Positions 14,440 to 46,468 of a DNA stretch of 64,000 nt are shown in pieces. The stretch is taken from positions 1 through 64,000 of IMG/VR virus record IMGVR_UViG_3300030385_002649; one strand, written 5' to 3'. The translations under genes and the position numbers were made by a program. A model generated the notes under the pieces. That model was not told the origin of the DNA. It did not search any database and worked only from the letters and a program-made list of their open reading frames with translations. How positions within the stretch are numbered: the stretch's first letter is position 1; each line of letters starts with the position of its first letter.

Positions 14440-14466
14440 AGTCCCGGGCAAGACTATAAACTGCCC
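14440..14466 (+). ncRNA. Putative H-type pseudoknot motif, copy 1
   Basis: AGTCC-CGGGCA-AGACT-ATAAAC-TGCCC; recurs at 23346 and 46442. Confidence 0.55.
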
Positions 14467-14481
14467 CTCGAAAGATAAATT

Positions 14482-14952
14482 ATGATAGAATATATCAAAG
14501 ATAACCTTGCTTTCACGACAGTATGTCTTGCTATGGCGTCAATTTTTTGTTTCAATATGGCTAGGCGTGTTGAAGTGAGAAGTACAGCGGACATTTTTAA
14601 GACTTCTCAGCCGATCCAGTACGATGACGTTTTCACTCTTGAAGAAAGATCTAAGATCTCGCGGTCGATCAAGTTGAATTTGCACGTTTGGCAGACTGAC
14701 TTCAATCAACCCATGCGGCGGACTAACATTAAGGTTGTCCGTGAGCTGTTTTTACACCCTGATACGGGTCAGTTGCTTGAGGGCTTGTACATCGATGATA
14801 GAAACATCGTCGTGTGGGCTGGTAAGAGTATGGAGGTTCCTGCTCTTTATCATGAGTTCTGTCACATGTACGACCATACGAAAGGGCACGCCAACCCTAA
14901 GTGGCCTGAGTGGGATGCCCGTGGCGATAGGATTGCTGGGATAGCGAGATGA
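14482..14952 (+). CDS. Membrane-anchored putative zinc metallopeptidase
   Basis: N-terminal hydrophobic helix; HExxH motif ALYHEFCH. Confidence 0.55.
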   Translation: MIEYIKDNLAFTTVCLAMASIFCFNMARRVEVRSTADIFKTSQPIQYDDVFTLEERSKISRSIKLNLHVWQTDFNQPMRRTNIKVVRELFLHPDTGQLLEGLYIDDRNIVVWAGKSMEVPALYHEFCHMYDHTKGHANPKWPEWDARGDRIAGIAR

Positions 14953-15461
14953 CCGAAAAGCCACAGGAGCAGGGAAAAGACCTTGTTGAGTGGCTAATTG
15001 AGAGCAGGATGACAAAGGATCAGCCCAATGCGTGTCCGGAGTGTGGGGAAACGGAGACAGGCGTCACTTTTATGCGGTTCGATTGTTTGAACCCTGGTTG
15101 TAAGCACTTTGCTGAGTATCTTGCAACTGATTGGTTGAATAACTTGGTGTATGCTGAGCCACAGTGGGGTCGCATCAGTCGTGAGACTCATGTTGATTTA
15201 ACGAAGAAGTGGACTCAGACCAAGTATCTCGGTTTGTATATTAATCGGGAAGAGGGTGTTGTCTGGGACCTTTGGTACGCTGAGTGGTGGGGCGGCAAGA
15301 TGTTGGTCGCTAATGCGGCGACTGGTGGTCGTGATCAAATTGATCTTGAACATGCTGATGGGTATCTTGCGGATGAGAATACGCGTAGGTATAAGCCTCA
15401 GGTTATTAATTTGATCAACCGTTGGAAGTTCAGCGTGAGGTTCAGGGAACTAGACCTTTGA
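14949..15461 (+). CDS. Hypothetical protein with Zn-ribbon
   Basis: CPECG...CLNPGC. Confidence 0.65.
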   Translation: MTEKPQEQGKDLVEWLIESRMTKDQPNACPECGETETGVTFMRFDCLNPGCKHFAEYLATDWLNNLVYAEPQWGRISRETHVDLTKKWTQTKYLGLYINREEGVVWDLWYAEWWGGKMLVANAATGGRDQIDLEHADGYLADENTRRYKPQVINLINRWKFSVRFRELDL

Positions 15462-15487
15462 GTTAGCCAAGTGGTGCGGGGGTCGTT

Positions 15488-15670
15488 ATGGGGAAATTAA
15501 AATTTAAATCTGTCAAGCAGGTATATAACTTGAAACCTGGAGAGTTGAACTCTGTCCTTGAAACGGACGGCTTGAATATCAAAATCAAGTGTGGAACTGA
15601 TGCCTGCATTGCGGCTCGGATCCTGAGAGTTTTAGCTTCAAGAATTGATCAAGCTAGAAATGAACACTAA
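15488..15670 (+). CDS. Hypothetical protein
   Basis: ORF track. Confidence 0.5.
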   Translation: MGKLKFKSVKQVYNLKPGELNSVLETDGLNIKIKCGTDACIAARILRVLASRIDQARNEH

Positions 15671-15876
15671 ATCGAGGAGACTAAGGTTTTATGATGTTGT
15701 GTTCAATTTGGGCTTGTTCCCACTGATTACTGCTTATGCGCTTTTTAAGTCGGGGGTGTTCTCTGACTTGGTGTATGGGTGGTTCGCAATATCCTCGATT
15801 GTGGTCCTAGTTCGGGTCGCAATCTTGGATTCTCGCCTGGCTCGTTGAGCCAACAGTTCTGTAGGAGGACTTTTTT

Positions 15877-16272
15877 ATGACTACTAGCAGCAACCATCTT
15901 TCCGTTCAGGATGCTCAGAACCTTGCCCGCCAGTTTTCGTCTCAGATTCAGGAGAACCAGCGCTTGCGCGATATCGTTCACACCCAGCAGGAGTCAACCT
16001 CCGGCTTGTACGAGACGAACTTTCGCGCGGCCTCGGATCGAACGAACCTGGAGCGTCAACTTCGGGAGACTCAGGGTGCCTTGGAGGCTGCGCGTTTCGA
16101 CGCTGATGCCACTAAGACTCTCATGAAGCGTAAGGAGGAGAACGCAGCACCGGTCGCTAAGACCAGCCGCTTCTCCAGCATTAAGCGAATCGGTCTCGGC
16201 CTTTTCTTTATTGCTCCGTACGCCTACCTGGGCGTGCAGGCTCTGCTCACCCAGACCACTCTGCTCGGTTAA
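15877..16272 (+). CDS. Coiled-coil protein with C-terminal membrane anchor
   Basis: AGGAGG RBS; C-terminal IGLGLFFIAPYAYLGV. Confidence 0.7.
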   Translation: MTTSSNHLSVQDAQNLARQFSSQIQENQRLRDIVHTQQESTSGLYETNFRAASDRTNLERQLRETQGALEAARFDADATKTLMKRKEENAAPVAKTSRFSSIKRIGLGLFFIAPYAYLGVQALLTQTTLLG

Positions 16273-16281
16273 CAGTTGAGG

Positions 16282-16313
16282 GGCGGGGAGAGGGGTTTTC
16301 CCCTCTCCCCGCC
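16282..16313 (+). terminator. 14-bp stem hairpin
   Basis: GGCGGGGAGAGGGG-TTTT-CCCCTCTCCCCGCC just after the stop. Confidence 0.6.
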
Positions 16314-16334
16314 ACCAACCACCAACCACCAACC
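16314..16334 (+). repeat. 7-bp tandem repeat (ACCAACC)x3
   Basis: Directly visible, abutting the hairpin. Confidence 0.9.
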
Positions 16335-16595
16335 ACAAATCGCATGATTCACGTGTGAATAAGGTCATGATCGAGATTGATGTTCACCCTGATGACTGAA
16401 AAAGAACGCCTTGTTCAGGAACTCCTGGATCTAGGCGGCTCCCTTCGACAAGAGAAGTTGGTCGAGCGAAGAAATCACGCCCGCTGAGATGCTGGCAATG
16501 CTAGAAAAAGACGCGGATCGTACCGATGATGAAGTGATTGGAAAGCTCCATGACTTCATCTATGTGTGGGATCTGCTAAGACAAGAAATGGAGAA

Positions 16596-17012
16596 ATGAT
16601 GAAAATCAAGCTAGACTTCAATAAGGACGATGGCAACTTCGTCGCCCCCATGCGACCATCGCCTAACAACAACTTGATTCAAGCGTGCGATTACATATAC
16701 TTGTGTCTCAAAGGCACGAGAGGAATGTTAGGGCTTGGAAAACGAGTTCAGGCATTCCGATTGACCATCCGGGATGGGGATGACCAACCTAAGAACTGGC
16801 CTGACAAGAAACCAGGATACGGTTGCAATTGGATTTGTGTCGATCTGATGCAATCCGTTGAAGGAGAAATTGTGATCGACACTATTGGGAACATGCGTTT
16901 CCTCGATGTGAATTGGGTGACTGACCAAATTCTGAGAAAGTTGTTTCCACAGCTAGATATTGTGGGCAGACGAGTCAAGATCTGGATTAAAGTCAGCAAG
17001 AAGCGAAAGTGA
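16596..17012 (+). CDS. Hypothetical protein
   Basis: GGAG RBS, ORF track. Confidence 0.65.
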   Translation: MMKIKLDFNKDDGNFVAPMRPSPNNNLIQACDYIYLCLKGTRGMLGLGKRVQAFRLTIRDGDDQPKNWPDKKPGYGCNWICVDLMQSVEGEIVIDTIGNMRFLDVNWVTDQILRKLFPQLDIVGRRVKIWIKVSKKRK

Positions 17013-17233
17013 TTGGCTGGCATGTATATCACAAGGATCAACCCGCTCATTGGTATTCGAAAACCGGCTTAAGCTGGTGCAAGCGATGGCGCGGTTCCGG
17101 CACACAATCCAGGGCTCCTGATTTTGTGTGCGAGGATTGCGCCGACCCTTGGCACAAAATCAAGTTCGGTTGGGCTCGACTGAAACAAAAAGCCAGATGG
17201 CTAAGGAGTAAACTCCGTGACAAGCGAGAATAA
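17009..17233 (+). CDS. Hypothetical protein
   Basis: GTGA overlap. Confidence 0.5.
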   Translation: MIGWHVYHKDQPAHWYSKTGLSWCKRWRGSGTQSRAPDFVCEDCADPWHKIKFGWARLKQKARWLRSKLRDKRE

Positions 17234-17492
17234 CGATAAGGCCGATGTTTTCAAGATCGATAAAGGGAGATGGTATCATATTCACTTCCTCTTGAAGATC
17301 CTCTATAGTGTCGTCTTCGAGTTAACGTTCGTATTTGCCGCTCCGATGATCGTGAGCGCGGTTCTTTTAGCTCTAGCGGTGGTGGCAGCTATTATGGTCG
17401 TCGTCGGCGGCGTGCTAATACCCTTTGCAGGGCCATATATCGTTTATCACGAAGTATGGTGCCCTCCAATCGAGGAAACCACAGAGTTATGA
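17217..17492 (+). CDS. Hypothetical membrane protein
   Basis: Long hydrophobic stretch. Confidence 0.6.
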   Translation: MTSENNDKADVFKIDKGRWYHIHFLLKILYSVVFELTFVFAAPMIVSAVLLALAVVAAIMVVVGGVLIPFAGPYIVYHEVWCPPIEETTEL

Positions 17493-17638
17493 AAAACAAA
17501 ATCAAGGAGATGATTTGGAAGAGTTGCTGCGTCATTGAGAACTTCTTCACGAAGTTGGACTTTAGCGAACAATTCCTGGTCATGTTTCCTTTTATCGTTT
17601 TACTTTTATACGCCCTCAGCTTTATCGGATAGGAACAA

Positions 17639-17893
17639 ATGGATATTTCATTGATCCAAAACATGGAGACGAGAACAGAGAAGATCAGAATTTTCTGGCC
17701 CGCTAGTGGGGACTCGTCTAAGAAGATTAGAGGCCCAGTACTTCTCATGACCGAAAGCGGTCACTGGATTGAAGAAGGACGACCAAGCGCTAGGTATAGC
17801 AAGATTAACGAGCTGATAACCTACCTTGCTGATTTCGAAGAAGCCAAAAGGCTCAAAATCTGGAACGATTCGTTCGCTGCTAGTGGGATTTAA
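17639..17893 (+). CDS. Hypothetical protein
   Basis: ORF track. Confidence 0.55.
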   Translation: MDISLIQNMETRTEKIRIFWPASGDSSKKIRGPVLLMTESGHWIEEGRPSARYSKINELITYLADFEEAKRLKIWNDSFAASGI

Positions 17894-17898
17894 TCCCT

Positions 17899-18171
17899 AT
17901 GTCGCGTGAAGACATAGACGGTTTCCCATATGAGCCAGGCTCGTATGAGTTCACTTCAAAACATTCTCCGAGATGGGTAGGAGTCATCATAAATTCTGAC
18001 AAGTATGCGCATGAAGTAGTTCGAGGGATTATCACTTATTGCCCAGAGGGGTTCACCCAGTATTCGGCCGGTAGTCCAGTGTCTCTGCTCTTGAGCGACC
18101 TAAGACGTCATGACAGAAATGTTAGCGACCTACAACAACCAAAGGACCTTTTTAATGTCAACTTTTCTTAG
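17899..18171 (+). CDS. Hypothetical protein, paralog of 20171..20461
   Basis: Shared YxPGxYxFT...PxW...PEG pattern. Confidence 0.65.
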   Translation: MSREDIDGFPYEPGSYEFTSKHSPRWVGVIINSDKYAHEVVRGIITYCPEGFTQYSAGSPVSLLLSDLRRHDRNVSDLQQPKDLFNVNFS

Positions 18172-18420
18172 CAATCAGGTGGATCCAGCCTCTACCTGTG
18201 AGAAGTGTGAAGGTTACACGGAAATCCCTAAGGCTTGGGTGTCGATCTATCCCCCGAGGATGTGCACTTGCCAGCCAAGTGGGGACAACGCATTGGTCGA
18301 CTGGGAAGCCAGAGCTAAGCGAGCCGAAAAAGAACTCAGAACAATGATCAGGGATCACGATGACTGCGGGTGTATGACTTGTCGATTCGCTGGCGTCTAC
18401 CTAAGAGAACTAACACCCAA

Positions 18421-18684
18421 ATGAAACACAAAGCCAACATCTCGTATGAAGATGACGTGGAAAAACGAGCACCCATCGACTTAACTGGTTTAAAGACTAG
18501 GCAGTTGATGAGTATGATGGCAACATCTCGCAAGTTCAACAACGGCATCTATAAAATCGGCACCGCTCAGTTCACATCTACTGAGTTGCTGAAGAAGGAA
18601 CTAGACACTAGGGAACATGTCCCTAACCGTGAAGAACGGAAGAAAACTCGCCAGGAGAAAGCTCGAAAGGGCCGCAACCGGTGA
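18421..18684 (+). CDS. Basic hypothetical phage protein
   Basis: LKKELDTREHVPNREERK. Confidence 0.65.
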   Translation: MKHKANISYEDDVEKRAPIDLTGLKTRQLMSMMATSRKFNNGIYKIGTAQFTSTELLKKELDTREHVPNREERKKTRQEKARKGRNR

Positions 18685-18962
18685 GTGCAGTGTGGCCGTA
18701 TGTGGACAACATGACGCAAGACATGTTGGATTTATTGTGGTCAGACGAGGCAATTGAAGCCGAGTGCCTATAACCACGAGAAAGCTCAGGTGGCTGTTGT
18801 TATGTTGCCAGCCAAAGCGGCCTCAGGTGAGTCAGTGGTACACGGTGCTAACATGGTTATGCATAGAATGGTCGATTATTGGAGAGACCGCATGTCCTTG
18901 ATAAAACCGTATAGACGACGGAAGCGGTAGGAATTTTAACATTAACACGGAAGGAGCTTCAA

Positions 18963-19727
18963 ATGAGTAGAGTCTTTGAAGCTGGAAAACAGTACATCTG
19001 TAGGGAGGCTCCGCAACCTGGGCATGGGCACCCATCATTTGCGCCAAACATGAGAGACGCAATTGGCGTCCCAATGACAGTCGCTAGCCGGTCTTGGTCT
19101 CCAGGGGACGGTTTCCCAACCGCAACGCTGAATCGTGTTGACGGCGGAGATGCGGGTCGCGGATATAGCTGGCACATCGACTGGATGGAAGAATACGTCC
19201 CAGAAGAGACAACTGTAGAGCGAAAGTTCGACGTCAGCAAATTGTACATCTGTCGAGCCGTTCCAGCAAGCATGGACGAGAACCCCATATTTGTCGGAGG
19301 TATGAGGGATCTTATCGGCGTACCGCTCAGGGTCTATAGAATAGATACTGACAACTGTGCGGGCTTGTGTGCCGTTGATAATCCAGATGGTACCAGATAC
19401 TCCTGGAACATCAAATGGGTCGAAGAATACAATGAGCCGCCTGCCGAGTTGACCAAGTTTATCGTTGGTGAGATATACATCTGCAACCAAGAACCAATAG
19501 ATCAAACACAAGAGCCCGTGTGGGTCACTGAAATGGAGAATTGCCTGCACAAGCCGCTGCGCTGTACTGTGACAAAGAGTTTCAGCGGCATCCCGTGCGG
19601 GTTCTTCTCTAACGGCTACTGGTACAACTTGAATTGGATGGAGAAGTATGGGTCTAAGTCGTCGCCTAGAGTGAAAGAGGCGGTTAAGGTTTCGGACTTG
19701 TTCGACTTTAACTTCACACCAAAATGA
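18963..19727 (+). CDS. Protein with three tandem ~75-aa repeats (small beta-barrel-like)
   Basis: Repeats begin F.xGKxYIC and end YSWHIDWMEEY / YSWNIKWVEEY / YWYNLNWMEKY. Confidence 0.75.
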   Translation: MSRVFEAGKQYICREAPQPGHGHPSFAPNMRDAIGVPMTVASRSWSPGDGFPTATLNRVDGGDAGRGYSWHIDWMEEYVPEETTVERKFDVSKLYICRAVPASMDENPIFVGGMRDLIGVPLRVYRIDTDNCAGLCAVDNPDGTRYSWNIKWVEEYNEPPAELTKFIVGEIYICNQEPIDQTQEPVWVTEMENCLHKPLRCTVTKSFSGIPCGFFSNGYWYNLNWMEKYGSKSSPRVKEAVKVSDLFDFNFTPK

Positions 19728-20461: not shown

Positions 20462-20482
20462 ATTTCTGAGAGAGAATCACAA

Positions 20483-22666: not shown

Positions 22667-22742
22667 GTGATGACGATACCTACGAATGCGTATGGGCAAT
22701 CATCGTCGTTCTGTTTATTTTTTATTTTCTAGGAGGTTTCTG

Positions 22743-23339
22743 ATGCGTGTTGCGAATTGTGTTCTTGTTCTTGGTTTTGTTTTGTCATTGACAGCTTGTC
22801 CTGGCCCTAACGGGGCTGCTAAAGCTCCAGTCGCTGATACCGGTGTGAAACAAGCTCACGCTGACATCTCGACTGGCAATGATGGGATGACGACCGAGCA
22901 GCGAAACGTCAAGAAGCGATTGGAGATGGACAATAGCTCCGGATCGATCAAGCACTTGTACGTTGTCTCCTCCATGAGCGGAGACGTGATCGTCTATTCG
23001 ACGGTCAAGGGTAAGGTGACTTCTTCTGGGAAGAGGTTGACTCCTCGCACGGTTGACGCTGGAACTGAGACGACTGGTCAATACAATCGTCTAAACAAGT
23101 TCGGTGTTCCAGTCAACATTGGCGGCGCTAATTATCGTACCACTGAGGTGATCCAGGATGACGGCACGTTTGGGTCGTCTATTCCTTACCTCTACTGGTG
23201 GGATGCTCAAGGCCGCTATCACCAGCATTACGTCACTGGTGGACAAATCCTTCATATCTCGGATCAACCGATTCGGGCTGCGAAGGTCATTCTGAACATG
23301 GAAGTTCAGGGTGATTCTGAGGGTTCTTCCTCGGATTGA
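22743..23339 (+). CDS. Putative lipoprotein
   Basis: AGGAGG RBS; LVLGFVLSLTAC lipobox; YSTVKGKVTS...LTP, DGTFG. Confidence 0.75.
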   Translation: MRVANCVLVLGFVLSLTACPGPNGAAKAPVADTGVKQAHADISTGNDGMTTEQRNVKKRLEMDNSSGSIKHLYVVSSMSGDVIVYSTVKGKVTSSGKRLTPRTVDAGTETTGQYNRLNKFGVPVNIGGANYRTTEVIQDDGTFGSSIPYLYWWDAQGRYHQHYVTGGQILHISDQPIRAAKVILNMEVQGDSEGSSSD

Positions 23340-23345
23340 TGATCC

Positions 23346-23372
23346 CGTCCTGGGCAGGACGTTAAACTGCCC
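23346..23372 (+). ncRNA. Putative H-type pseudoknot motif, copy 2
   Basis: CGTCC-TGGGCA-GGACG-TTAAAC-TGCCC. Confidence 0.55.
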
Positions 23373-23394
23373 TTTATCCACACTAACGAACCTT

Positions 23395-23500
23395 TCATAC
23401 ATGAGATTGCAGTTATGATTTTTGCATGTTTGTTTTGCATATCGTAAGTTATAATTTCTTATATTTTATGATTGGTTAGATGATATTATAGTCACGTGGA
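23395..23500 (+). promoter_or_regulatory. AT-rich intergenic tract with TATAAT at 23450
   Basis: Strong local AT enrichment; no clean -35 at 17-bp spacing. Confidence 0.3.
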
Positions 23501-23704
23501 CGTTAAGCACAACCCTCCAGGGACGGAGACTAAACCGCCCGTTAGAATGATAGTTTAAGAGACAGTCTGCGCCCTGTTAGTTTGGGCGTTTAAACATTAG
23601 AGTTCTCATGGTAAAACGAGCGCATAACACAATTTGTGCTCATGCGGGTCCGAATCCCGTTCATTCTTTTTTCTAACCATTCCAACCCTTTATAAGGAGG
23701 AAAC

Positions 23705-24205
23705 ATGTCTCGATATACAATTGGGAAGAAAATTCATGAGATGCCTTTCAACCAAGGTAAGGCACTTGAGAACATATTGCATCCAGTGTGCCTCAAACTC
23801 GGGGTGCTCAGCCTAAGACACAGGATCGTCTGTCAAGAAGTAATCGACCGCGATTATTTGTTGCCAATCTTGGAAGAGGCTGAGCGCTGGTATCTAGATG
23901 ATTTCGAGCCTGACGAGGAACGTTCGATGATCGTCCCAAAGGAAGACATCAAACAATTCAAAGAACTGAACGAGATCCTAGAAACGATCATCAAGCGAAA
24001 CAGTCGCAAAAAAGAAAAGACCATCACCTACACAGAAGGCAAGAAATTGATTGATACATCCTCTTTCTTGCTTACCTTCGAACCAGAGGAGGATGACAGA
24101 ATTCGTTGTAAGGACGGTCACACTATGGAAAAGAAGACACTCCAAGATCTGGTGAACCACGTGAGGGACGCTAGTCCCGCTCTAATGCTCAAATGGCGAG
24201 ATTAA
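23705..24205 (+). CDS. Hypothetical protein
   Basis: AAGGAGG RBS. Confidence 0.7.
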   Translation: MSRYTIGKKIHEMPFNQGKALENILHPVCLKLGVLSLRHRIVCQEVIDRDYLLPILEEAERWYLDDFEPDEERSMIVPKEDIKQFKELNEILETIIKRNSRKKEKTITYTEGKKLIDTSSFLLTFEPEEDDRIRCKDGHTMEKKTLQDLVNHVRDASPALMLKWRD

Positions 24206-32217: not shown

Positions 32218-33885
32218 TTAATCTAAATTTAAGACCCATTTCTTTTTTCCATAATCCATTATTTTGTATAGACCCTGAGCGCGCCTCAATTGTTCTTCAG
32301 TTTTGTCAGAGGCGCGCTCAATTGTTGTTTTGCGAAATTTTGACTTGTGAAATCTAGATCTGTGGTCGGTATACCAGTAATCCGGCTTTACATCATGTAT
32401 AAAGTTAAACCCGCATTTGCTATAAACGGTTCCGTTTGACAATCTGTTATCACTAAAAGAGGAAACGCTCCCGGTTATTCCGAATGACGATAACCTTTTT
32501 ATGAGATAAGACCATAACCCATGCACTAAAAATGAAGGATGAGAGCACATTCTGACAATTTCATAATTCTCGTCCGATTGCCTACTAGGAGTATGGATGC
32601 TTAAAGCGCCAACTAATTGTCCTTCAAAATACACACCGAGATGAAGCTTAGCAGACCTGAACCCTAAGTAATGATAAGAATCGTAAAATTGCCTCACTTC
32701 GTTAGCTCGCACGATTCTTATCGAGCATTTCTGAGGTCTGATTTTGGTTCTTATCGCGGTGTGCGTTTTAGACAACAAGTAATTCTTGACAAGATCTTTC
32801 TTGTTGTCCCACTCGTCTGAGTACAAAACAATAACATCATAATTCTTGCTTAAAGACTCAAATTTGGCTTGATCAGTTCGATTTTTCCTAAAATAAGATG
32901 AATGATATCTTAAACCATTAAATTCAATAATTAATGAGTGCTCGCGTATTAATAGGTCGACAGAATAATTATCAACTTTAGCTTCTAATTCGGACTTTAC
33001 GCCATTTTGCTGCAAAAAATTTTTAATACTGACGACTGGAGCAGAAACTTTAAAACTTGCGCAGCCACACGATTTTATTTGTTTTAGAAAGATATCATAA
33101 AATCGTGGAGAAAAAACTTTATGGCATAACAAGCACTCAATTTTTGGTTTTTTCTTAGAAAATGTGATTGGTTTTAAAAAAGAACCATTTAGTGATTCTT
33201 GAAATTCAACGAAGTTTGACGGATAGGATCCTTTCTTAAAACCGCTATCTTTCCACCATTCAGCCGCTTTAATAGAGCAATTACCACAGCTTTTAATTTT
33301 TCCAGAGGTAAGATGCGATACTCTTGCTGTGTGATTGCTTCCGCACGCACATTTACATAATAATTTAATTTCAGAATTTACCGATATTGGTTTTTTAGGG
33401 ATCGCTTCAACAGTTAAACGTCCAAACGTGTTTCCAACCCACCATTTTGGGTCCTTTATGTTGGGGTTGATCGTTTTTGTTTTCTTTGTCTTTTTCCCTT
33501 TAAAATTTAGAGAATGCTCAGCGAACTTGGCAGATTTGCTTTTTAATAAGCACCCGCAGGATTTGGTTAAGCCGTTTATCACTGATTTCAAAACAATTGA
33601 CTTAACATTCCCGCATTTGCAGTTGAATTTAACTTTTTTGTTTTTCGAAATCGGGAATGTTAAGTCATCAATGATTGGGTTCAGTAAAATTAACGACAGG
33701 TTTTGCGATAGGTTTAATAGGTCTTCTTTTAACAAAAAAGAACATTTTCCACATGATTTGGATACGCCAGTAGCGAAGTTTTTCCAAGGGAATGTTTTTA
33801 CAGTTTTTAACCGACACTGGCATTGGAATTTTACTAGTTGTCGGCTGTGTTTTTTTAAAGGAGTATTGTTTAATGGGATCCACAT
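32218..33885 (-). CDS. Hef-like homing endonuclease: repeated Zn-ribbons, PD-(D/E)xK/Vsr-like nuclease and C-terminal GNAT/Mom-like domain
   Basis: Repeated CxCG...SCG units; VDLLIREHSLIIEFNGLRYHS; FYDSYHYLG...YEIVRMC...FSDNRLSNGTVYSKCGF...PDYWY; AT-rich and inverted relative to neighbours. Confidence 0.75.
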   Translation of the reverse strand: MWIPLNNTPLKKHSRQLVKFQCQCRLKTVKTFPWKNFATGVSKSCGKCSFLLKEDLLNLSQNLSLILLNPIIDDLTFPISKNKKVKFNCKCGNVKSIVLKSVINGLTKSCGCLLKSKSAKFAEHSLNFKGKKTKKTKTINPNIKDPKWWVGNTFGRLTVEAIPKKPISVNSEIKLLCKCACGSNHTARVSHLTSGKIKSCGNCSIKAAEWWKDSGFKKGSYPSNFVEFQESLNGSFLKPITFSKKKPKIECLLCHKVFSPRFYDIFLKQIKSCGCASFKVSAPVVSIKNFLQQNGVKSELEAKVDNYSVDLLIREHSLIIEFNGLRYHSSYFRKNRTDQAKFESLSKNYDVIVLYSDEWDNKKDLVKNYLLSKTHTAIRTKIRPQKCSIRIVRANEVRQFYDSYHYLGFRSAKLHLGVYFEGQLVGALSIHTPSRQSDENYEIVRMCSHPSFLVHGLWSYLIKRLSSFGITGSVSSFSDNRLSNGTVYSKCGFNFIHDVKPDYWYTDHRSRFHKSKFRKTTIERASDKTEEQLRRAQGLYKIMDYGKKKWVLNLD

Positions 33886-33936: not shown

Positions 33937-35064
33937 ATGCAGCGAAGTAAAGTTAATTTTATAGTCGATGGACAATGGGGTAGTTGTGGAAAGGGCCTAA
34001 TTGCTGGCTACTTAGCTGAAAAACACAAGGTTAACGTCTGCTCTACTAACAACATGCCCAACGCTGGGCACACCATGGTCCTAGAAGATGGAACCAAGTT
34101 CATTTCTAAGATCCTCCCCGTCACCGCTTTCCTCAATACCGTTGGACAACGATCTAATATCCTTATCGGGCCAGGAGCGGGATTTTGTCTTGACCGCCTC
34201 TTCATGGAAATCGAACGATGCGGTTTAGACGAGGAAGACGTTTTGATCCATCCAAGGGCTATGGTGGTCACCCAAGAGCATGCTGCGGCTGAGCGAGGCG
34301 ACTCAAGTGGTGTATCAACCAAGCACATTGCTAGTACCATGCAAGGTTGTGGGACGGCTCGGGCTGAAAAGATTATGCGGGGCGCACACGTAGAACTAGC
34401 ACGTGATTTCGATGTTCTCAAGGGCCTCGTGACGAACAACGGAGATGAGTGGTTCACCCTGGTCCACAACATCCTCAAGGGCGATAAGACCATGTGGTTG
34501 CACGAGGGCTCACAAGGGTTCAGCTTAGGTATGAATCACGGCAGCCATTATCCACAATGCACCTCACGAGAATGTACGACCGCTCGCGAAATCGCTGACA
34601 TGGGAATTTCCCACCAGAAAGTCGGTGACGTCTACCTAGTCATCCGCCCCTTCCCAATTCGAGTCGGCAACGTCATCGAGGACGGCAAGGAGGTTGGATA
34701 CTCAGGAGACTGCTACGACGACCAAGAGGAAATCTCCTGGGCTGACCTGAAGGCACAATCCGGCTACCCCGCCGATTTCGATCTGAAGGAATTGACCACG
34801 GTGACCAAGCGTCTTCGTCGTTGCTTCACCTACTCGGATTTCCAGGTCAGGATGGCGGCGGAAATCAACGGTGCTACTAAGATTGCATTGAACTTCGCTA
34901 ATTATCTTGATTACTCAATCTTCCAAACTAGTGGAAACAACATTAAAGACCTTCCTGATAAGGTTCGGGATTTTATCGCCATGATCGAGGACCAAACTGG
35001 CCTCCCTGTGACGCTGGTGGGTACCGGACCTGGCAACAACCACGTCTGGGATTTAGAAGAATAG
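33937..35064 (+). CDS. purZ: Adenylosuccinate-synthetase homolog with PurZ signature (N6-succino-2-amino-dAMP synthase)
   Basis: GQWGSCGKG (Ser where PurA has Asp), PNAGHT, EGSQGFSL, YPQCTSR, RPFPIRV, ELTTVTKRLRR, ALNFANY (NF rather than TKLD). Confidence 0.75.
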   Translation: MQRSKVNFIVDGQWGSCGKGLIAGYLAEKHKVNVCSTNNMPNAGHTMVLEDGTKFISKILPVTAFLNTVGQRSNILIGPGAGFCLDRLFMEIERCGLDEEDVLIHPRAMVVTQEHAAAERGDSSGVSTKHIASTMQGCGTARAEKIMRGAHVELARDFDVLKGLVTNNGDEWFTLVHNILKGDKTMWLHEGSQGFSLGMNHGSHYPQCTSRECTTAREIADMGISHQKVGDVYLVIRPFPIRVGNVIEDGKEVGYSGDCYDDQEEISWADLKAQSGYPADFDLKELTTVTKRLRRCFTYSDFQVRMAAEINGATKIALNFANYLDYSIFQTSGNNIKDLPDKVRDFIAMIEDQTGLPVTLVGTGPGNNHVWDLEE

Positions 35065-40868: not shown

Positions 40869-41018
40869 TGAGACGAAGACTAATGAGGATGACAAGCCAA
40901 GTGGTGGCGGCGAGGTTCAATACGAACGCATCGCTAACATCTGGACCCTTATCCCAATCAGTAAGTAAGCAGAGACGATGATCTCTGAGAAACATACAAA
41001 GGATTGGTACCGGGATAA

Positions 41019-41726: not shown

Positions 41727-41758
41727 AATCACCCTTTGTTCCTTTTAGGAGTATTATC

Positions 41759-42250
41759 ATGGACCGTTCGTATATCTTCATGAGCGAAATCGGAATTTCG
41801 CTCGCAATGGAGTTCACGCCTGAGAACACGGAGAGTCTCAAATTCGCAATCGCTTTCTGCAACAAGAAGGACAACTTCAACCGTAAGACAGCCCGGGGCA
41901 TTCTGGACAAGCGTTTGGAAAAAGAAGCTTCGACATACCTACGATCAACCGCTTTCGAAGGTGACAAGCCTCGCAAGGACGTCTTGATCCCGTTTGCTAA
42001 CGCTCTTGGTGATTATGTCCAGGAGAACGTCATCATCCGTTTGAAATCTGGCGATGAAATCCGAGGATTTCTCTGTGAGAACCCGAATGGTGACACTGTA
42101 ATTCGGCGTGGTCGTGACACTATCACGATTGATACTGGGAATATTGACAGTATCACCACGACGAGCTGTCGTCGCAACGTAGATAATGTGTTGGAGGCGT
42201 TCCAGCAAGTCAACATCAACCAAGAACAAGAAGACCTAGTGGTCGTCTAG
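41759..42250 (+). CDS. Hypothetical protein, possible C-terminal Sm-like barrel
   Basis: AGGAG RBS; VIIRLKSGDEIRGFL...TIDTGNIDSI. Confidence 0.6.
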   Translation: MDRSYIFMSEIGISLAMEFTPENTESLKFAIAFCNKKDNFNRKTARGILDKRLEKEASTYLRSTAFEGDKPRKDVLIPFANALGDYVQENVIIRLKSGDEIRGFLCENPNGDTVIRRGRDTITIDTGNIDSITTTSCRRNVDNVLEAFQQVNINQEQEDLVVV

Positions 42251-42262
42251 CGAGGAGATCAA

Positions 42263-43375
42263 ATGGTCAAGGCATTTGAAATTGGAAAATGGTATAGGGT
42301 TAAGAAGCCCGCCGAAGAAGCAGCCCCAGCACCATCTCGGGTAAGATGGGAGAATGACTATGACGACTACGATGGCAAAGTGTTGCAATGTCGTTACGTC
42401 TTCTTTAACAAGATCCACGGATTTCTAGGAGCCTCACGACTTTTTGGTTTCCACGCTAGCTGGGTTGAAGGCCCGTTCGACTCTAAAGAAGAAGCCGAAA
42501 AGCTTGGAAATTTCGTTGGGGCCCATTGGGACTCGATGAACCAAACCGGTTATCACGCCTATAAGAACGAACTCGGGGTCGTCACTGAGATTAAGCAGCC
42601 AACTGCTGCCGAGCAAGTTTCTTACCTGACTGCCACCGCGAAGAAAGAAATCTTCGACACTAGAGATAATTTCCGTGACCGCATGCTTCAGGCCGGAGTG
42701 GGAATCCCCGATCATTACATCGATCAGATCGCCAATCACAAGAAGCCCAAGATTTGGAAATCTACAGTTCCCTATGACGGTTCTAAAAAAATCGTCATGG
42801 TTTCGTCAGTGTCTGAGTCAAGCGCTTTGCAGCGTAAAGTTGATGACATGTTGACAGGGTTGCGCCAAACGTCTAAGTCTCAGCGTGAGATCCAACGACG
42901 TTTGGACTCCCTGGAGTTGAAGAATTTGACGGATATGGGCAGGGTGACTAAGATCATCGAAGATCGTCTAAACAAGTTCGAAGGTCAGAATTTCAACAGT
43001 GCATTCCAAGGCAAGGATGGAAAGCTGTACTGCGTAACTTCGGATAAGGGCCTGTTCGTTTATGACGATGAGGCTGGCGCTGGCAGTTGGTCGCTGATGA
43101 TGCCATCTGATTCTCTATCCTCGACGGAGAAGATGAAGGTTGAAATGAAGCGGATCGATGAGGAAGCTGACCGTGATATCGACAATATTATCGAAAATTA
43201 CAACAAGCGCCGCGCCGCTGACCGGAAGCACAGTGAGAAGCTCCGCAAGAACTTCGACAATAACAAGACCGTCCCGGTGAAAAAGAAGAGCCTCCCTCTT
43301 TGGTTGGCCGTTGGGCTGGGCTCGATCAGCGCTACAGCTGCCACGCTTGGGACTGTCTTTTACTGGTTGTTCTAA
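42263..43375 (+). CDS. Tail-anchored coiled-coil protein with the shared N-terminal barrel-like domain
   Basis: FEIGKWYRV...FGFHASWVEGP; C-terminal TM; GAGGAG RBS. Confidence 0.7.
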   Translation: MVKAFEIGKWYRVKKPAEEAAPAPSRVRWENDYDDYDGKVLQCRYVFFNKIHGFLGASRLFGFHASWVEGPFDSKEEAEKLGNFVGAHWDSMNQTGYHAYKNELGVVTEIKQPTAAEQVSYLTATAKKEIFDTRDNFRDRMLQAGVGIPDHYIDQIANHKKPKIWKSTVPYDGSKKIVMVSSVSESSALQRKVDDMLTGLRQTSKSQREIQRRLDSLELKNLTDMGRVTKIIEDRLNKFEGQNFNSAFQGKDGKLYCVTSDKGLFVYDDEAGAGSWSLMMPSDSLSSTEKMKVEMKRIDEEADRDIDNIIENYNKRRAADRKHSEKLRKNFDNNKTVPVKKKSLPLWLAVGLGSISATAATLGTVFYWLF

Positions 43376-43767
43376 TGGCGAAGAAGAAATCGAAGCTCGC
43401 CCGAGTTGAGATTAAGTGTACTGAGCCGGGTTGCGATGCAACCCGGCTCATTCACCATGCGTCCATCAAGGAGACAACCAGGTGTTGTGGTTGTCAAGAA
43501 GAAGCTAAAAGGCGAAAAGGCCGCGAGCGCTATCGAAGGCGTAAGGGCTTGCCTATTGAGGATCACTTGCAGAATCAGAACCAGAAGGATGAATACGTCG
43601 AAGAGGTTAAGAAAGCGCATGAAAGTGCATGGGAGAATATCGGTCCTCGTGATCCTGACGCTCCTAAACCTAAGACTCGACCTGAAGAGCAATCCTCCGA
43701 AATGTTGGGTCGGATTGCTAGTTTGTTAGACATGACCGGCGACGACGCCACAGACGATGATTGGTAG
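43375..43767 (+). CDS. Zn-finger/basic protein
   Basis: CTEPGC...RCCGC followed by KRRKGRERYRRRK. Confidence 0.65.
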   Translation: MAKKKSKLARVEIKCTEPGCDATRLIHHASIKETTRCCGCQEEAKRRKGRERYRRRKGLPIEDHLQNQNQKDEYVEEVKKAHESAWENIGPRDPDAPKPKTRPEEQSSEMLGRIASLLDMTGDDATDDDW

Positions 43768-43899
43768 GATTATGAGTTGTGAAGACTGTAACTGTGAGTC
43801 AGGGACCCCGGATGGTACCTGTAATTATCGAAGCGCCATGGATGTACTAGGCGCAATTATGCAAGGCACGGCACTCGTCGGAATCCTTGTTGCGACCTT

Positions 43900-44265
43900 T
43901 TGGTTGCTACTGTAACGGTGAGCGACCAAAAATTGTCGAAGCTATCAAATGGGGATTACCTGTTTGAGCTACCAAGCGGATATACAATGCGAATCATGTC
44001 AGATGAACATTGTATATCCGCTTCTTTGTATAAGGACTCGGAGGGTGATGACTCGCCCCCGATAAAAGATTTTCAATTCAATCATGGTGACCCTCCCGAG
44101 GTTGATCCGTTGATTGAAATTGAACGTCAGAAGAGACTCTCTGAGGTCTATGCTGACCCTGACCTTTCTGACGAAGACCACGGGTATTGGCGCGGTAGAG
44201 TCGATGGCCTGGACCAGTTGGAGCGCTTCGTAAATTGCGGAGAGATCCAACCCCTTGAGGATTAG
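43900..44265 (+). CDS. Hypothetical protein
   Basis: ORF track. Confidence 0.5.
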   Translation: MVATVTVSDQKLSKLSNGDYLFELPSGYTMRIMSDEHCISASLYKDSEGDDSPPIKDFQFNHGDPPEVDPLIEIERQKRLSEVYADPDLSDEDHGYWRGRVDGLDQLERFVNCGEIQPLED

Positions 44266-44363
44266 GGGTTTCCGAGAGGAAGTCCTTGTATCTAAGAGCA
44301 AACGGACGAAAAGTCCACCCTGTTTCGAAATCTGTTTTTTCAACCTCAACATTGTGAGGAATC

Positions 44364-45680
44364 ATGAATATTTCAATTGGTAAGAAAGCTGTGCTGCTCT
44401 GTCGTGCGGCGGGAATCACGTCCTTTATGTGGGGATTCCACGGGCTCGGCAAGTCGTCGATCCACAAGCAAGTCTGCCGAGAGCGTTTCTGGGGTTTCAT
44501 CGACGAGCGGTGCTCTCAGATGGAAGCGAGCGACCTGCGCGGTCTGCCTGACAAGCAGAACCAACGGACCGTCTATCTTCCCCCCGGTTCACTCCCCCGT
44601 GAGCATGAGGTCGGCCCAAACTGTCCCGCTTGCTTCTACGACGAGGAGTTCGGCCATGACCCGAAGGACGAGGCCAATAAGACGAAGTTCGACGAGATCC
44701 TGAAGACGACGCCCGACGCTGACTACTGCAAGGGTATGCTCTTCCTTGACGAGCTTAACCGTGCGGAGGACGACGTTCTCCAGGCTGCTTTCCAGCTTGT
44801 TCTCGACCGGGAAATCGGCATGTACAAGCTTCCGCCTGGTTGGTCGGTGCACGTTGCCGGTAACTTCGGTGGTGGGCAGGGAATGTATAGCGTCAACAAC
44901 TTCGACGACGCTGCGTTCCTTGACCGATTCTGTCACTTGACCCTTTCGCCTGACGACCGATATATGGAAGACTGGTCTAAGTACATGGTCGAGCGGGAGG
45001 AAGACGGGATTATCAACAAGATCTTGCAGTTCGTTTCCTTCAACGAGGATCACTTGACTGGTAAGCTAACCGGGTCGAACGACATCAGTATCCAACCATC
45101 GCCACGCTCTTGGGAGATGGTGAGTAAGGTTGAGGCTGCGTGTCGCAAACACCCAGAGTTGATCGAGGGTCGTAAGACCGTCATCTCTGGCCTCATCGGT
45201 CATGGCTTGGTCGAGACTTACGAGCAGTTCACTTGTAAGGTCACGCCCAACGAGATCATGAACCAGGGCCTCCGGAGCATTCAAAAGAAGCTGGAAGACC
45301 TTAACCGTAACGAGCTGGTCGGTCTCGTCTGGGCCCTTGGTGCTAACGCCAAGAAGCTTGAGAGGCCAACCACGACGGTGTGCAACAACGTGATTGACTT
45401 CTTGGAGTGGCTGGCCAACGTGAACGCTGAGCGAGATCTCGCCGTTTCGCTGTCCACCAACCTGGTGACCCTTGACGGAACCGAGCGTTCCCTAAGTGGC
45501 GCACTAGTTAGCAACCCTAGCCTGGCTAAGCTTGCTAAGAAGTACGGCATCGAGCCGGATAAGTCTAAGAACGATACCGGGTCCAACCCCTGGCTTGAGG
45601 GCTTGACCAATCGTCCTAGCCTCCAGGATTTGCTGTCTAGCATCACCAAAGCTAACGATTCAGCCACGAGCACTAAGTAG
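44364..45680 (+). CDS. MoxR-like AAA+ ATPase
   Basis: GFHGLGKSS, LFLDELNRA, VAGN, DAAFLDRF, PSPRSWE. Confidence 0.85.
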   Translation: MNISIGKKAVLLCRAAGITSFMWGFHGLGKSSIHKQVCRERFWGFIDERCSQMEASDLRGLPDKQNQRTVYLPPGSLPREHEVGPNCPACFYDEEFGHDPKDEANKTKFDEILKTTPDADYCKGMLFLDELNRAEDDVLQAAFQLVLDREIGMYKLPPGWSVHVAGNFGGGQGMYSVNNFDDAAFLDRFCHLTLSPDDRYMEDWSKYMVEREEDGIINKILQFVSFNEDHLTGKLTGSNDISIQPSPRSWEMVSKVEAACRKHPELIEGRKTVISGLIGHGLVETYEQFTCKVTPNEIMNQGLRSIQKKLEDLNRNELVGLVWALGANAKKLERPTTTVCNNVIDFLEWLANVNAERDLAVSLSTNLVTLDGTERSLSGALVSNPSLAKLAKKYGIEPDKSKNDTGSNPWLEGLTNRPSLQDLLSSITKANDSATSTK

Positions 45681-45906
45681 TGATCGACGGCGAACCCCGC
45701 CCCGTTTGGGAGGACTTTCTCAGGGATCCCCCTGAGCCGGTCCTCTCGTGGGCTCGATTTTGGAGCGCCCTAGACCGTTGTTTGGTGGCGGTGCTCTTGC
45801 TCAGTATCTTCAGCTTCTCTTATTTCCACTTGAGATCGCTTGAAGCCGCTGAAGCGTGTCTTGATTTGAATTGTGAATGTAGTACCCCTTACGGAGAGTA
45901 GGAAAA

Positions 45907-46410
45907 ATGACGATTTACTGTGATATGGACGGAGTTGTGGCCTCGTGGGAGAAAGCGAGGGACAATCTCGTCGGTCCAGGTGCTAGCAAATCCCAAACGT
46001 GGAAGGCCATTAGCAAAGCCGGACACAGCTTCTGGGCTAGCATCCCAGAATTTAAGTGGTCTCGGAAGTTTTACGACGATTTGAAGAGGACCGATGACAC
46101 TTGTTTTTTAACCAGCCCTAGTTTGGACCCTAGCTCGTGCTCTGGTAAGTTGGAATGGTTGCAAAGGTTCACTGAAGACAGGAACTTCCGTAATTACATT
46201 ATCACTAACCAAAAGTATCGCCTGGCGTACGGACCCGGAGCCATCCTAATCGATGACAAAGAGAAGCACGTCGATGCTTTCAATAAGAAGGGTGGGATCG
46301 GAATCCTATTTCCACGGCCTTACAACCGAGCAAGGGATCGCGCCGATGATCCGGTGAGCGCAGTGATGGAAACACTGTCTCTAATTTATCCGGGGCGCAT
46401 CCAAGTCTAG
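45907..46410 (+). CDS. 5'(3')-deoxyribonucleotidase (NT5C-like HAD)
   Basis: IYCDMDGVV, FLTSP, GKLEWL, ILIDD. Confidence 0.8.
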   Translation: MTIYCDMDGVVASWEKARDNLVGPGASKSQTWKAISKAGHSFWASIPEFKWSRKFYDDLKRTDDTCFLTSPSLDPSSCSGKLEWLQRFTEDRNFRNYIITNQKYRLAYGPGAILIDDKEKHVDAFNKKGGIGILFPRPYNRARDRADDPVSAVMETLSLIYPGRIQV

Positions 46411-46441
46411 GTCAAGAGGGAGAAATCGGTCTCCCGCTTGG

Positions 46442-46468
46442 CGTCCTGGGTAAGATGTAAAACTGCCC
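46442..46468 (+). ncRNA. Putative H-type pseudoknot motif, copy 3
   Basis: CGTCC-TGGGTA-AGATG-TAAAAC-TGCCC. Confidence 0.55.

Follow-up and report, generated by a model that had tools for sequence, protein, structure and literature searches.

A compact H-type RNA pseudoknot located just behind stop codons in unrelated phages and in bacteria of many phyla

Compact H-type pseudoknots of about 26-28 nt are known from the luteovirid (BWYV-type) -1 frameshifting signals, which have a very short L1 containing a conserved C, an A-rich L3 ending in AAAC/AAA that can line the minor groove of stem 1, and a location 5-8 nt downstream of the codon in the ribosomal A site. The pseudoknot examined here shares these properties, but the upstream codon is a stop codon rather than a slippery heptamer (X XXY YYZ, 5-9 nt upstream), there is no overlapping -1 ORF, and it is found in DNA phages and bacteria, often in multiple copies, and also before tRNAs and promoters. 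The preQ1-I riboswitch aptamer (Rfam RF00522) is likewise a very small H-type pseudoknot in which the P1 hairpin loop pairs with a 3′ tail and an A-rich L3 ends in AAAC immediately before the 3′ strand of P2. In contrast to preQ1-I, the present element has a strong P2, an L2 of one variable nucleotide (U 62%, A 21%, C 14%, G 3%) instead of the conserved ligand-pairing C, no que genes nearby, flanking genes from unrelated families, and a location after ORFs instead of in a 5′ leader with an expression platform; a cmscan search gave no match to this family even at E ≤ 10.

The RNase III sites of T7 and the enterobacterial REP elements are intercistronic stabiliser and processing elements that, as here, are repeated, co-oriented, structured, placed just after stop codons inside polycistronic units and indifferent to the identity of the flanking genes; however, they are long hairpins specific to a phage or species, whereas this element is a 27-nt pseudoknot with the same tertiary-contact nucleotides across phyla. 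The MuLV-type read-through signal has the same order of stop codon, short spacer and H-type pseudoknot, and a spacer of 5-7 nt was found in 43% of 412 instances of the present element, but no conserved in-frame coding extension follows: in a multi-copy contig (L034) the gaps of 52-67 nt to the next ORF fall in all three frames, the 55-nt gap from stop to next ORF around the first copy described below is out of frame, and in one frame the pseudoknot itself supplies UGA or UAA. Type III antitoxin RNAs (ToxI family) are also small pseudoknot-forming, phage- or defence-associated RNAs with an A-rich segment, but work as tandem direct repeats immediately upstream of a ToxN/AbiQ-type endoribonuclease gene. 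Searches with cmscan against Rfam 15 gave no hit at the gathering threshold and no relevant hit at E ≤ 10 on short stretches, and literature searches with the literal sequence found no paper.

Copies of the pseudoknot in a jumbo phage

The 64,000-nucleotide stretch of phage DNA analysed (positions 1 to 64,000 of IMG/VR record IMGVR_UViG_3300030385_002649; the window) had been proposed in a first-pass annotation to contain three copies of a 27-nt intergenic motif, and this observation is confirmed, with all three copies present at the positions and with the sequences given there. The degenerate consensus TCCYGGGYARGAYKWWAAACTGCCC, allowing up to 3 mismatches, matched only at 14442, 23348 and 46444, all on the + strand, and none of 100 dinucleotide-preserving shuffles gave a match. 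The gaps from the upstream stop codon to the first paired base are 13, 6 and 31 nt, in agreement with the 6-31 nt originally noted. The 370.8-kb genome holds three further copies outside the window, at 355437, 369584 and 370455, giving six copies that are all on the + strand and all intergenic, within about 62 kb, in a region that includes rIIA/rIIB.

Copy 1 (14440-14466, +) reads A-GUC-CC-GGGCA-A-GAC-U-AU-AAAC-UGCCC, where P1 is formed by 14440-14443 with 14452-14455, P2 by 14446-14450 with 14462-14466, and L3 is 14456-14461; a structure scan gave 4/4 P1 and 5/5 P2 pairs, and the covariance model R1 gave E = 1.2e-6. It follows the TAG stop (14424-14426, +) of a 499-aa ORF (12927-14426), the next ATG is at 14482, 15 nt after the pseudoknot, and neither flanking ORF has a Pfam or PHROG hit. 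Copy 2 (23346-23372, +) reads C-GUC-CU-GGGCA-G-GAC-G-UU-AAAC-UGCCC, with P1 formed by 23346-23349 with 23358-23361 and P2 by 23352-23356 with 23368-23372 (R1 E = 2.1e-9). It follows the TGA stop (23337-23339, +) of a 217-aa ORF (22686-23339) at the minimal spacing, which is the modal position of the family, and a 332-nt AT-rich non-coding stretch lies before the next long ORF at 23705. Copy 3 (46442-46468, +) reads C-GUC-CU-GGGUA-A-GAU-G-UA-AAAC-UGCCC, with a G1.U14 wobble in P1 and a U9.G23 wobble in P2 (R1 E = 5.4e-7). It follows the TAG stop (46408-46410, +) of a 5′-3′ deoxyribonucleotidase-like ORF (45907-46410; Pfam NT5C and phrog_2643 hits), and the next ATG is at 46495. The sixth copy in this genome carries two compensated changes, AUC/GAU and GGACA/UGUCC.

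Two details of the first-pass annotation required correction. Stem 1 had been drawn with 5 bp, but contains 4 bp (positions -1 and 1-3 with 12-15), as the innermost C4:N11 'pair' is complementary in only 5 of 107 instances. A weaker fourth candidate had been placed at 23514-23540 (+; CCUCC-AGGGAC-GGAGA-CU-AAAC-CGCCC), and is not supported: although the P1 core CUC/GAG pairs, P2 has only 3 of 5 pairs, the otherwise invariant A10-U22 pair is replaced by C.C, position 5 is A, and the sequence is absent from both the structure scan and the R1 hits at E ≤ 1. It is at best a degenerate relative, and the minus strand at this site scores as a terminator-like hairpin.

Covariation and distribution of the family

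In order to determine whether the motif is conserved as RNA structure, pairing was scored in a larger alignment, as the first-pass annotation had set out. In 129 instances, 96.9% of 1161 cells pair and 7 of 9 pairs change on both sides, values that 0 of 500 shuffles reached, while slid controls gave 26-54%. The outer pair -1:15 pairs in 84 of 107 instances against 52.9 expected, with all six pair types represented, and variants of P2 are compensated (GAGCA/UGCUC, GGACA/UGUCC, AAACA/UGUUU, GGCCA/UGGCU and GAGUA/UACUC). When both sides of a P1 inner pair were forced off consensus, they still paired in 97/97, 102/103 and 40/40 cases (239 of 240 overall; chance is 44%). The G.U-compatible variation works only on the + (coding) strand, so the element acts as RNA and not as duplex DNA. 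The central inference of the first-pass annotation, a conserved structured RNA that folds as an H-type pseudoknot with compensatory changes, is strongly supported by independent covariation across hundreds of instances, and its statement that no named family could be matched also held.

The resulting fold has a P1 of 4 bp of free sequence, an L1 of C-Y, a P2 of 5 bp that is usually GGGYA with UGCCY, an L2 of 1 nt and an L3 of WWAAAC, with C4, the A10-U22 pair and the AAAC linker being invariant. The element was found in hundreds of unrelated phage contigs from IMG/VR, in cultured Moorella, Nostoc and Synechococcus phages, and in bacterial contigs labelled with about a dozen phyla. In bacteria it is fused to a conserved ...AHCxxGC small ORF of ~20 aa, encoding an Arg/Lys-rich, Cys/His-containing peptide with which it co-occurs strictly.

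Placement relative to flanking genes

In 412 unique viral instances, the distance from the upstream stop to position 1 is 6 (102 instances), 7 (48) or 8 (27), and only 17 instances are closer. A stop triplet, not a slippery site, ends 6-8 nt before position 1 in 177 of these 412 and in up to 73% of the first set of 123 instances, and no slippery heptamers precede the element. In this first set, the 59 upstream ORFs at distance 6-8 fall in 33 unrelated families. The upstream gene is on the strand of the pseudoknot at 88% of junctions, and the pseudoknots are not enriched at convergent gene ends (15% against 23.5% background).

What lies downstream varies. The distance to the downstream ATG is broad, and 47 downstream and 51 upstream protein families flank the first 93 ORFs on each side. 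A tRNA (Asn, Thr or Asp) begins 3-5 nt after the pseudoknot in 6 loci, extended -10 promoters follow it in a leaderless-gene group, and in five cyanophages TGCTATAAT begins 6 nt after it; the spacing to downstream -10 boxes varies from 6 to 25 nt. The element does not have the form of an intrinsic terminator, as no U tract follows and the tail is A27 and then C/U/A-rich, and canonical terminators follow within 110 nt in only 6% of viral and 18% of bacterial loci. One contig has 8 copies in 14 kb, each in a 52-67-nt gap after an ORF. In bacteria, the pseudoknot sits at a fixed 8-nt distance from the last conserved Cys codon in nearly all of 98 small ORFs, whose stops lie 5 nt before it or 1, 13 or 19 nt into it, always in one frame, with about 60% of the ORFs ending inside it. 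Similarly, the cyanophage gene T4-GC_147 ends ...PSWV-UGA inside the pseudoknot.

Possible functions

The analysis establishes that each copy is transcribed-strand RNA folding on its own into a compact 27-nt pseudoknot of a very large family shared by many unrelated phages and by bacteria of many phyla; everything said about its function is inferred. It is inferred to be a constitutively folded structural module, as both helices covary freely and only the nucleotides expected to build the loop-helix tertiary contacts are invariant (C4, A10-U22, A18-A20, C21), and to be an end-of-cistron element placed as close behind the stop codon as a terminating ribosome allows, with 5 nt between the stop and the first pair, such that it would stay folded while the upstream ORF is translated, whatever lies downstream. 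Of the functions listed in the first-pass annotation (3′-end protector, processing signal, ligand- or protein-binding regulator, or mimic of type III antitoxin pseudoknots), 3′-end protector or processing signal fits this context best, although this is not proven. The tentative proposal, with a probability of about 0.35, is a mechanical roadblock: after read-through transcription and endonucleolytic cutting in the G-poor tail, or RNase P cutting at an adjoining tRNA, 3′-to-5′ exonucleases would stop at the pseudoknot, the upstream cistron would keep an intact stop codon and a defined, stable 3′ end, and neighbouring cistrons would be insulated from one another, a role like that of the T7 RNase III hairpins or REP elements. 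In bacteria and in T4-like cyanophages, where the module is overlapped by the end of an ORF, ribosomes would in this view have to melt it, which could gate translation of the next gene. The position after stops and before tRNAs and promoters is consistent with this class of element, but only DNA metagenome runs hold this phage, so the 3′-end role is inference from position alone. Furthermore, a simple exonuclease barrier does not obviously need such strict conservation of loop nucleotides across phyla, the terminator hairpin following 18% of bacterial loci would make a separate protector redundant, the pseudoknots are not enriched at convergent gene ends, the fixed spacing in the bacterial small ORFs points to coupling with the ribosome rather than to decay, and the pile-up at the minimal distance (102 : 48 : 27) is steeper than a mere 'not closer than' rule needs, so that direct contact with the terminating ribosome may be what is selected.

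The less likely but possible alternative is a ribosome-coupled element, selected to abut the mRNA entry site of a ribosome whose A site holds the stop codon, or in bacteria the codons after ...HCxxGC, and modulating termination, pausing, recycling or reinitiation, that is, translational coupling or gating of the next cistron. The distance distribution has its sharp boundary and mode at a 5-nt spacer, which is the position of the ribosomal helicase site, and the bacterial spacing and the end of T4-GC_147 are consistent with this reading. Some Rrf2 genes also start 8-14 nt after the pseudoknot with no Shine-Dalgarno sequence, where de novo initiation next to a folded pseudoknot is unlikely and coupling to the small ORF is implied. 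However, pseudoknots directly followed by tRNA genes or promoters have no downstream cistron to couple, some bacterial units end in a terminator facing a convergent gene, and there is no consistent frame relation between the upstream stop and the next ORF, so read-through fusion is excluded. A binding site or decoy for a conserved trans-acting factor, such as a host RNA-binding protein, the basic ...AHCxxGC peptide, or RNA polymerase as in put-type antitermination, which phages would display in early transcripts to use or titrate the factor, is considered unlikely. The multiple co-oriented copies in phage regions rich in early-type genes, the strict co-occurrence with the peptide in bacteria and the placement outside ribosome footprints in phages are in its favour, but an unsystematic comparison gave no candidate protein that co-occurs across the very different phages, terminators to be overridden are rarely nearby, and the peptide genes appeared only in bacterial contigs, while the cultured phage hosts found (Moorella, Nostoc and Synechococcus) may or may not carry the small ORF.

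Similarly doubtful is a minimal riboswitch-like aptamer with a preQ1-I-like fold, in which a small planar ligand or an ion would bind at the P1/P2 junction lined by C4, C21 and A18-A20 and the element would report a global or stress signal. Invariant unpaired nucleotides alongside variable helices are the usual signature of aptamers, and the bacterial neighbours are stress genes (Rrf2 and, judged by N-terminal sequence, Hcp, superoxide reductase, flavodiiron protein, ArsR, a P-type ATPase and USP). Against this, P2 with three G-C pairs plus two more should fold without a ligand, no Shine-Dalgarno sequence or terminator overlaps the element as an expression platform, it follows genes rather than preceding a defined regulon, and no Rfam riboswitch model matches. 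A mimic of type III antitoxins is not supported, as the six copies in the jumbo phage are single and 0.9-190 kb apart, and the flanking ORFs scanned showed no toxin-like hit in Pfam or PHROGs. A DNA-level signal (a phage RNA polymerase promoter, an operator or a small mobile repeat) is very unlikely: although a conserved sequence of ~25 nt is repeated upstream of genes, as T7-type promoters are, and in some phages lies just upstream of -10 boxes, this is largely refuted by covariation that keeps Watson-Crick and G.U pairing on one strand only. In addition, the spacing to -10 boxes varies, no T7-like RNA polymerase (PF00940) was found in the jumbo genome, and the same element sits in bacterial chromosomes inside small-ORF transcripts.

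A more far-reaching reading, unlikely but compatible with the evidence, is that the element is a universal, previously uncatalogued RNA class that engages a conserved partner rather than a passive barrier, either as the smallest natural aptamer yet (27 nt), sensing a global or stress signal, or as a pseudoknot that docks on the ribosome at the mRNA entry or decoding site. In favour of docking, the loop C-U-GGG-Y-A pairing with a CCY triplet looks like an anticodon loop on its codon, with wobble exactly at Y26. In bacteria the element would then form a two-part module with the conserved peptide ...[KR][KR]x[FYW]M[IL][PR]xVAHCxxGC, of which phages would have captured the RNA half to tap into or titrate that host system. 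The H-C-x-x-x-C spacing of this peptide equals that of the Ni-hook of NiSOD.

Copies of the element in the jumbo phage genome

In order to verify the 27-nt motif in the window, the three sequences listed in the first-pass annotation were located, and are present on the + strand at 14440-14466, 23346-23372 and 46442-46468, so that the original observation holds. A search with a degenerate consensus allowing up to three mismatches identified these three sites and no others on either strand, and none of 100 dinucleotide-preserving shuffles gave a match. The window is the first 64 kb of a 370,804-bp IMG/VR virus record, and almost all of its long ORFs are on the + strand. The record has a "direct terminal repeat" (window 1-77 and genome 370741-370804), which is only a 46-63-nt overlap of a GAC-rich repeat with an 18-nt period, located inside an ORF that spans the junction (poly-Asp); the record is therefore an assembled circle and this is not a real long terminal repeat.

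A structure-based scan of the whole genome, in which both helices were left free and only C4, Y5 and AAAC were fixed, identified six copies on the + strand, none on the - strand at the same stringency, and 0-1 in shuffled sequence. A covariance model identified the same six copies, with E-values between 2e-9 and 5e-5. The copies are at 14441, 23347, 46443, 355437, 369584 and 370455, and on the circle they all fall within about 62 kb. All six are intergenic, and the gaps from the upstream stop to position 1 are 14, 7, 32, 6, 7 and 7 nt, respectively. The copy at 355437 carries two compensated changes (P1 AUC/GAU and P2 GGACA/UGUCC), and the ORF just upstream of this sixth copy (genome 355233-355430; positions 334-531 of the fetched locus L245) encodes a 65-aa Cys-rich, zinc-ribbon-like protein that ends 6 nt before the pseudoknot. 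A weaker fourth candidate had been proposed in the first-pass annotation at 23514; although its P1 core pairs, P2 has only three pairs, the invariant A10-U22 pair is lost and the covariance model gives E > 1, and it is not counted here.

The window encodes rIIA and rIIB, an RNA ligase, a deoxyribonucleotidase, an HNH endonuclease, three tRNAs and an adenylosuccinate-synthetase homologue, and looks like the accessory, early-type region of a very large T4-like-lineage phage from a marine metagenome. The adenylosuccinate-synthetase homologue (33937-35064) is 375 aa in length (Pfam E = 2.6e-34); phage homologues of this size include PurZ enzymes of 2-aminoadenine (Z-base) genomes. The only large minus-strand ORF in the window (32218-33885) sits in a 37% G+C island (the window is about 47-50%), carries Mom-like and restriction-endonuclease-like domains, and looks like a recently acquired DNA-modification or defence gene. 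A perfect DnaA-box-like nonamer, TTATCCACA, is located at 23374-23382, starting 2 nt after the copy at 23346-23372, and opens a 332-nt AT-rich non-coding stretch (23373-23704). Within this stretch, at 23584-23668, is a tRNA-like remnant with a good T-arm (GCGGGTCCGAATCCCGT), which matches tRNA-Sec only weakly (E = 3), is not called by ARAGORN, and may be a decayed tRNA or a small RNA gene. Megablast and blastn searches with the window returned no GenBank phage matches, and no relatives of the 499-aa ORF upstream of the first copy were found in IMG/VR, leaving no orthologous sites of this particular phage for comparison. Only two DNA runs, from one marine sample, were found to hold the phage.

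Structure and distribution of the pseudoknot family

Positions are numbered from G1 of the common GUCC. P1 is formed by positions -1 and 1-3 with 12-15, L1 is C4 and Y5, P2 is formed by positions 6-10 with 22-26, L2 is N11, and L3 is positions 16-21 (WWAAAC). The first-pass annotation had included C4:N11 as a fifth pair of stem 1; however, this pair is complementary in only 5 of 107 instances. The outer pair -1:15, which was free in the search pattern, pairs in 84 of 107 instances against 52.9 expected (0 of 5000 permutations), with all six pair types represented. Position 26, which lay outside the search pattern, is a pyrimidine in 106 of 107 instances and pairs with G6. Further copies in the fetched loci, found with P2 left free, show the compensated P2 variants GAGCA/UGCUC, GGACA/UGUCC, AAACA/UGUUU, AAGCA/UGCUU, GGCCA/UGGCU and GAGUA/UACUC. 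In an alignment of 129 sequences, 96.9% of cells pair and 7 of 9 pairs change on both sides; none of 500 shuffles reaches any of the five measures used, and sliding the partners reduces pairing to 26-54%. IMG/VR was then scanned with patterns that force both sides of one inner P1 pair off consensus, and the two bases were complementary in 97/97, 102/103 and 40/40 unique instances, where 44% is expected by chance. P1 is therefore a helix of free sequence, and the apparent GUC/GAC invariance is attributed to the initial search pattern. The positions that remain invariant are C4, the A10-U22 pair, A18-A20 and C21, which in H-type pseudoknots are the nucleotides expected to build loop-helix contacts. 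The G.U-tolerant variation works only on the + strand, so the element acts as RNA. The interpretation offered in the first-pass annotation, a conserved structured RNA folding as an H-type pseudoknot with compensatory changes, is thus supported.

An exact-pattern scan of IMG/VR identified at least 119 contigs, ranging from 4 to 428 kb and with unrelated flanks, and the same pattern identified at least 120 contigs in one-genome-per-species bacterial assemblies, with record titles naming Omnitrophota, Desulfobacterota, Zixibacteria, Planctomycetota, Bacillota (Peptococcaceae, Moorella, Desulforudis, Desulfotruncus), Chloroflexota, Actinomycetota, Spirochaetota and others. The abundance and host range from all collection scans are lower bounds, and the instance sets were shaped by the patterns used. 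Among cultured phages, the element is present in Moorella phage MTATph1, Nostoc phage NMeng1 (Autographiviridae) and the T4-like Synechococcus phages S-MbCM7, Syn33, S-MbCM6, S-CAM8 and ACG-2014b; it is also present in jumbo phages and in many small podovirus-size contigs.

Genomic context in phages and bacteria

Of 412 unique viral instances, the distance from the stop of the upstream ORF (at least 40 aa; ORFs in fetched loci are simple longest-ORF calls) to position 1 is 6 nt in 102, 7 nt in 48 and 8 nt in 27, and is closer than 6 nt in only 17. In the first set of 123 instances, the 59 upstream ORFs at a distance of 6-8 nt fall in 33 unrelated families. A 5-nt spacer to the first pair is, according to ribosome helicase studies, the closest a structure can sit without being opened by a ribosome holding the stop codon in its A site. 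[quoted passage not shown] By contrast, the distance to the next ATG is broad, and what follows is heterogeneous: unrelated ORFs (47 families among 93), including an endolysin, a Dps-like protein, Hsp20 and polymerase parts; tRNA genes (Asn, Thr, Asp) starting 3-5 nt after the pseudoknot in six loci, and a pseudo-tRNA that does the same in Nostoc phage NMeng1 (fetched loci L007, L044, L060, L098, L099, L151 and L256); and extended -10 promoters of leaderless genes. RNase P cleavage at the tRNA loci would leave the pseudoknot at the very 3' end of the upstream RNA. Canonical terminators follow in only 6% of viral loci, the pseudoknots are not enriched at convergent junctions, and about eight nucleotides after the pseudoknot are G-poor. 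One 14-kb locus has eight copies, each in a 52-67-nt gap behind an ORF.

In five cyanomyovirus genera (loci L259-L263 and L258, from Synechococcus phages Syn33, S-MbCM6, S-CAM8, ACG-2014b and S-MbCM7), the pseudoknot overlaps the last four codons (...PSWV-UGA) of the conserved "DNA binding protein" T4-GC_147, and the TGCTATAAT promoter of cobS follows 6 nt later. The synonymous third base of the Val codon covaries with its P2 partner (GGGUU/AACCC, GGGUC/GACCC). Syn1 and B3, which have different synteny, lack the element.

Bacterial genomes carry one to three copies, and every chromosomal copy inspected is fused to a small ORF with a strong Shine-Dalgarno sequence, for example MLRKRYMLRATAHCKEGCSL, MKHFMIPRVAHCSDGCSL and MDITIKYMLRPVAHCKEGCSRVSWA. 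These small ORFs (bacterial loci L125-L255, e.g. L246:1440-1530, L147 and L192) are 14-31 aa in length, conserved and unannotated, with the consensus ...[KR][KR]x[FYW]M[IL][PR]xVAHCxxGC, and third-codon-position variation shows that they are coding. The H-C-x-x-x-C spacing of the peptide, a metal-binding-like motif, equals that of the Ni-hook of NiSOD. In 98 of 117 bacterial hits the last conserved Cys codon lies 8 nt before position 1, and the stop falls 5 nt before the pseudoknot, overlaps G1, or uses the UGA (11-13) or UAA (17-19) inside the pseudoknot, always in one frame. Searches of Pfam and NCBIfam returned no family for the peptide. The neighbouring genes recur and indicate stress and metal-resistance loci: an Rrf2 regulator, identified from its N-terminus, and genes with identities inferred from N-terminal sequences rather than from family scans, namely a ferredoxin, hybrid-cluster protein (Hcp), superoxide reductase (SOR) and flavodiiron protein (FDP) following Rrf2, ArsR-type regulators, P-type ATPases, an RND pump and universal stress proteins (USP).

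Proposed role, comparison with known elements and a second motif

The analysis establishes that the element is an RNA pseudoknot under strong purifying and compensatory selection, that it is anchored to the 3' side of ORFs at the edge of the terminating ribosome, and that it is indifferent to what lies downstream. That it is a constitutively folded module is inferred, because P2 is strong and there is no expression platform, as is the view that it serves the upstream cistron or the boundary between cistrons; every functional step proposed here is likewise inferred from sequence and position alone. The favoured, tentative reading (probability of about 0.35) is a compact roadblock, at which 3'-to-5' exonucleases would stop after endonucleolytic cuts in the G-poor tail, or after RNase P cuts at an adjoining tRNA, leaving a stable message with an intact, accessible stop codon and insulating neighbouring cistrons. 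In this view it would be the functional analogue of T7 RNase III hairpins or REP elements. Where an ORF runs into the pseudoknot (bacterial small ORFs and cyanophage T4-GC_147), ribosomes would have to melt it, and in Rrf2 loci that lack a Shine-Dalgarno sequence 8-14 nt downstream this probably gates reinitiation.

The strongest rival, somewhat less likely than the roadblock, is a ribosome-coupled role, which is favoured by the pile-up at exactly the minimal spacer and by the fixed spacing to the last conserved codon of the small ORF. A site or decoy for a trans-acting factor and a minimal aptamer are both doubtful but cannot be dismissed, whereas a DNA-level signal is essentially excluded. 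A promoter for a T7-like polymerase was rejected because no PF00940 match was found in the 370.8-kb genome, the 882-aa ORF in the multi-copy contig is a family A DNA polymerase, and the covariation argues against it. A terminator was rejected due to the lack of a U tract and the lack of enrichment at convergent junctions, read-through or frameshifting on frame and slippery-site grounds, and an IRES-like start directly after the pseudoknot because the gaps to the ATG are not multiples of three.

In architecture the element is closest to luteovirid (BWYV) frameshifting pseudoknots and to the preQ1-I aptamer, and it fails the defining tests of both; it also fails the tests for read-through signals (MuLV), type III antitoxins, intrinsic terminators and phage-polymerase promoters. 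A gathering-threshold search of the whole window against Rfam 15 identified only three tRNAs, E-value searches with the first copy, a consensus-type copy and a bacterial small-ORF unit returned nothing relevant, and ten bacterial loci gave only a T-box and tRNAs elsewhere. Literature searches with the literal RNA and peptide sequences and with keywords, and text searches of 2026 preprints on non-coding element discovery, found no description, although it cannot be excluded that the element sits unnamed in a large candidate catalogue such as the 2023 catalogue of over 10,000 phage RNA candidates (PMC10690425); a prior description is considered unlikely. Small H-type pseudoknots are already known, and what appears to be new is a very widespread family of them with an unusual stop-codon-anchored placement and, in bacteria, a fused micro-ORF. 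If the family really is undescribed, it is one of the most widely spread small structured RNAs still missing from Rfam. A 27-nt, covariation-validated module at a precise distance from stop codons makes it possible to ask how phages and bacteria set the ends and lifetimes of cistrons inside operons, and whether terminating ribosomes sense downstream structure, and is a compact, portable candidate part for insulating or stabilising cistrons in synthetic operons.

A second recurrent intergenic motif was identified in the same podovirus-size contigs, consisting of CUGGGCA, a hairpin of variable length and sequence, and GUGUAAGUCCCAG, with 22 phage instances found (L034, at 1655-1686, 2283-2314 and 7088-7122; also the fetched loci L013, L019, L038, L058, L091, L096, L097, L107 and L118). 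It is followed by the same G-poor, Shine-Dalgarno-less leaders, and shares CUGGGCA and a GU(A)AA linker with the pseudoknot, but is nested, not knotted.
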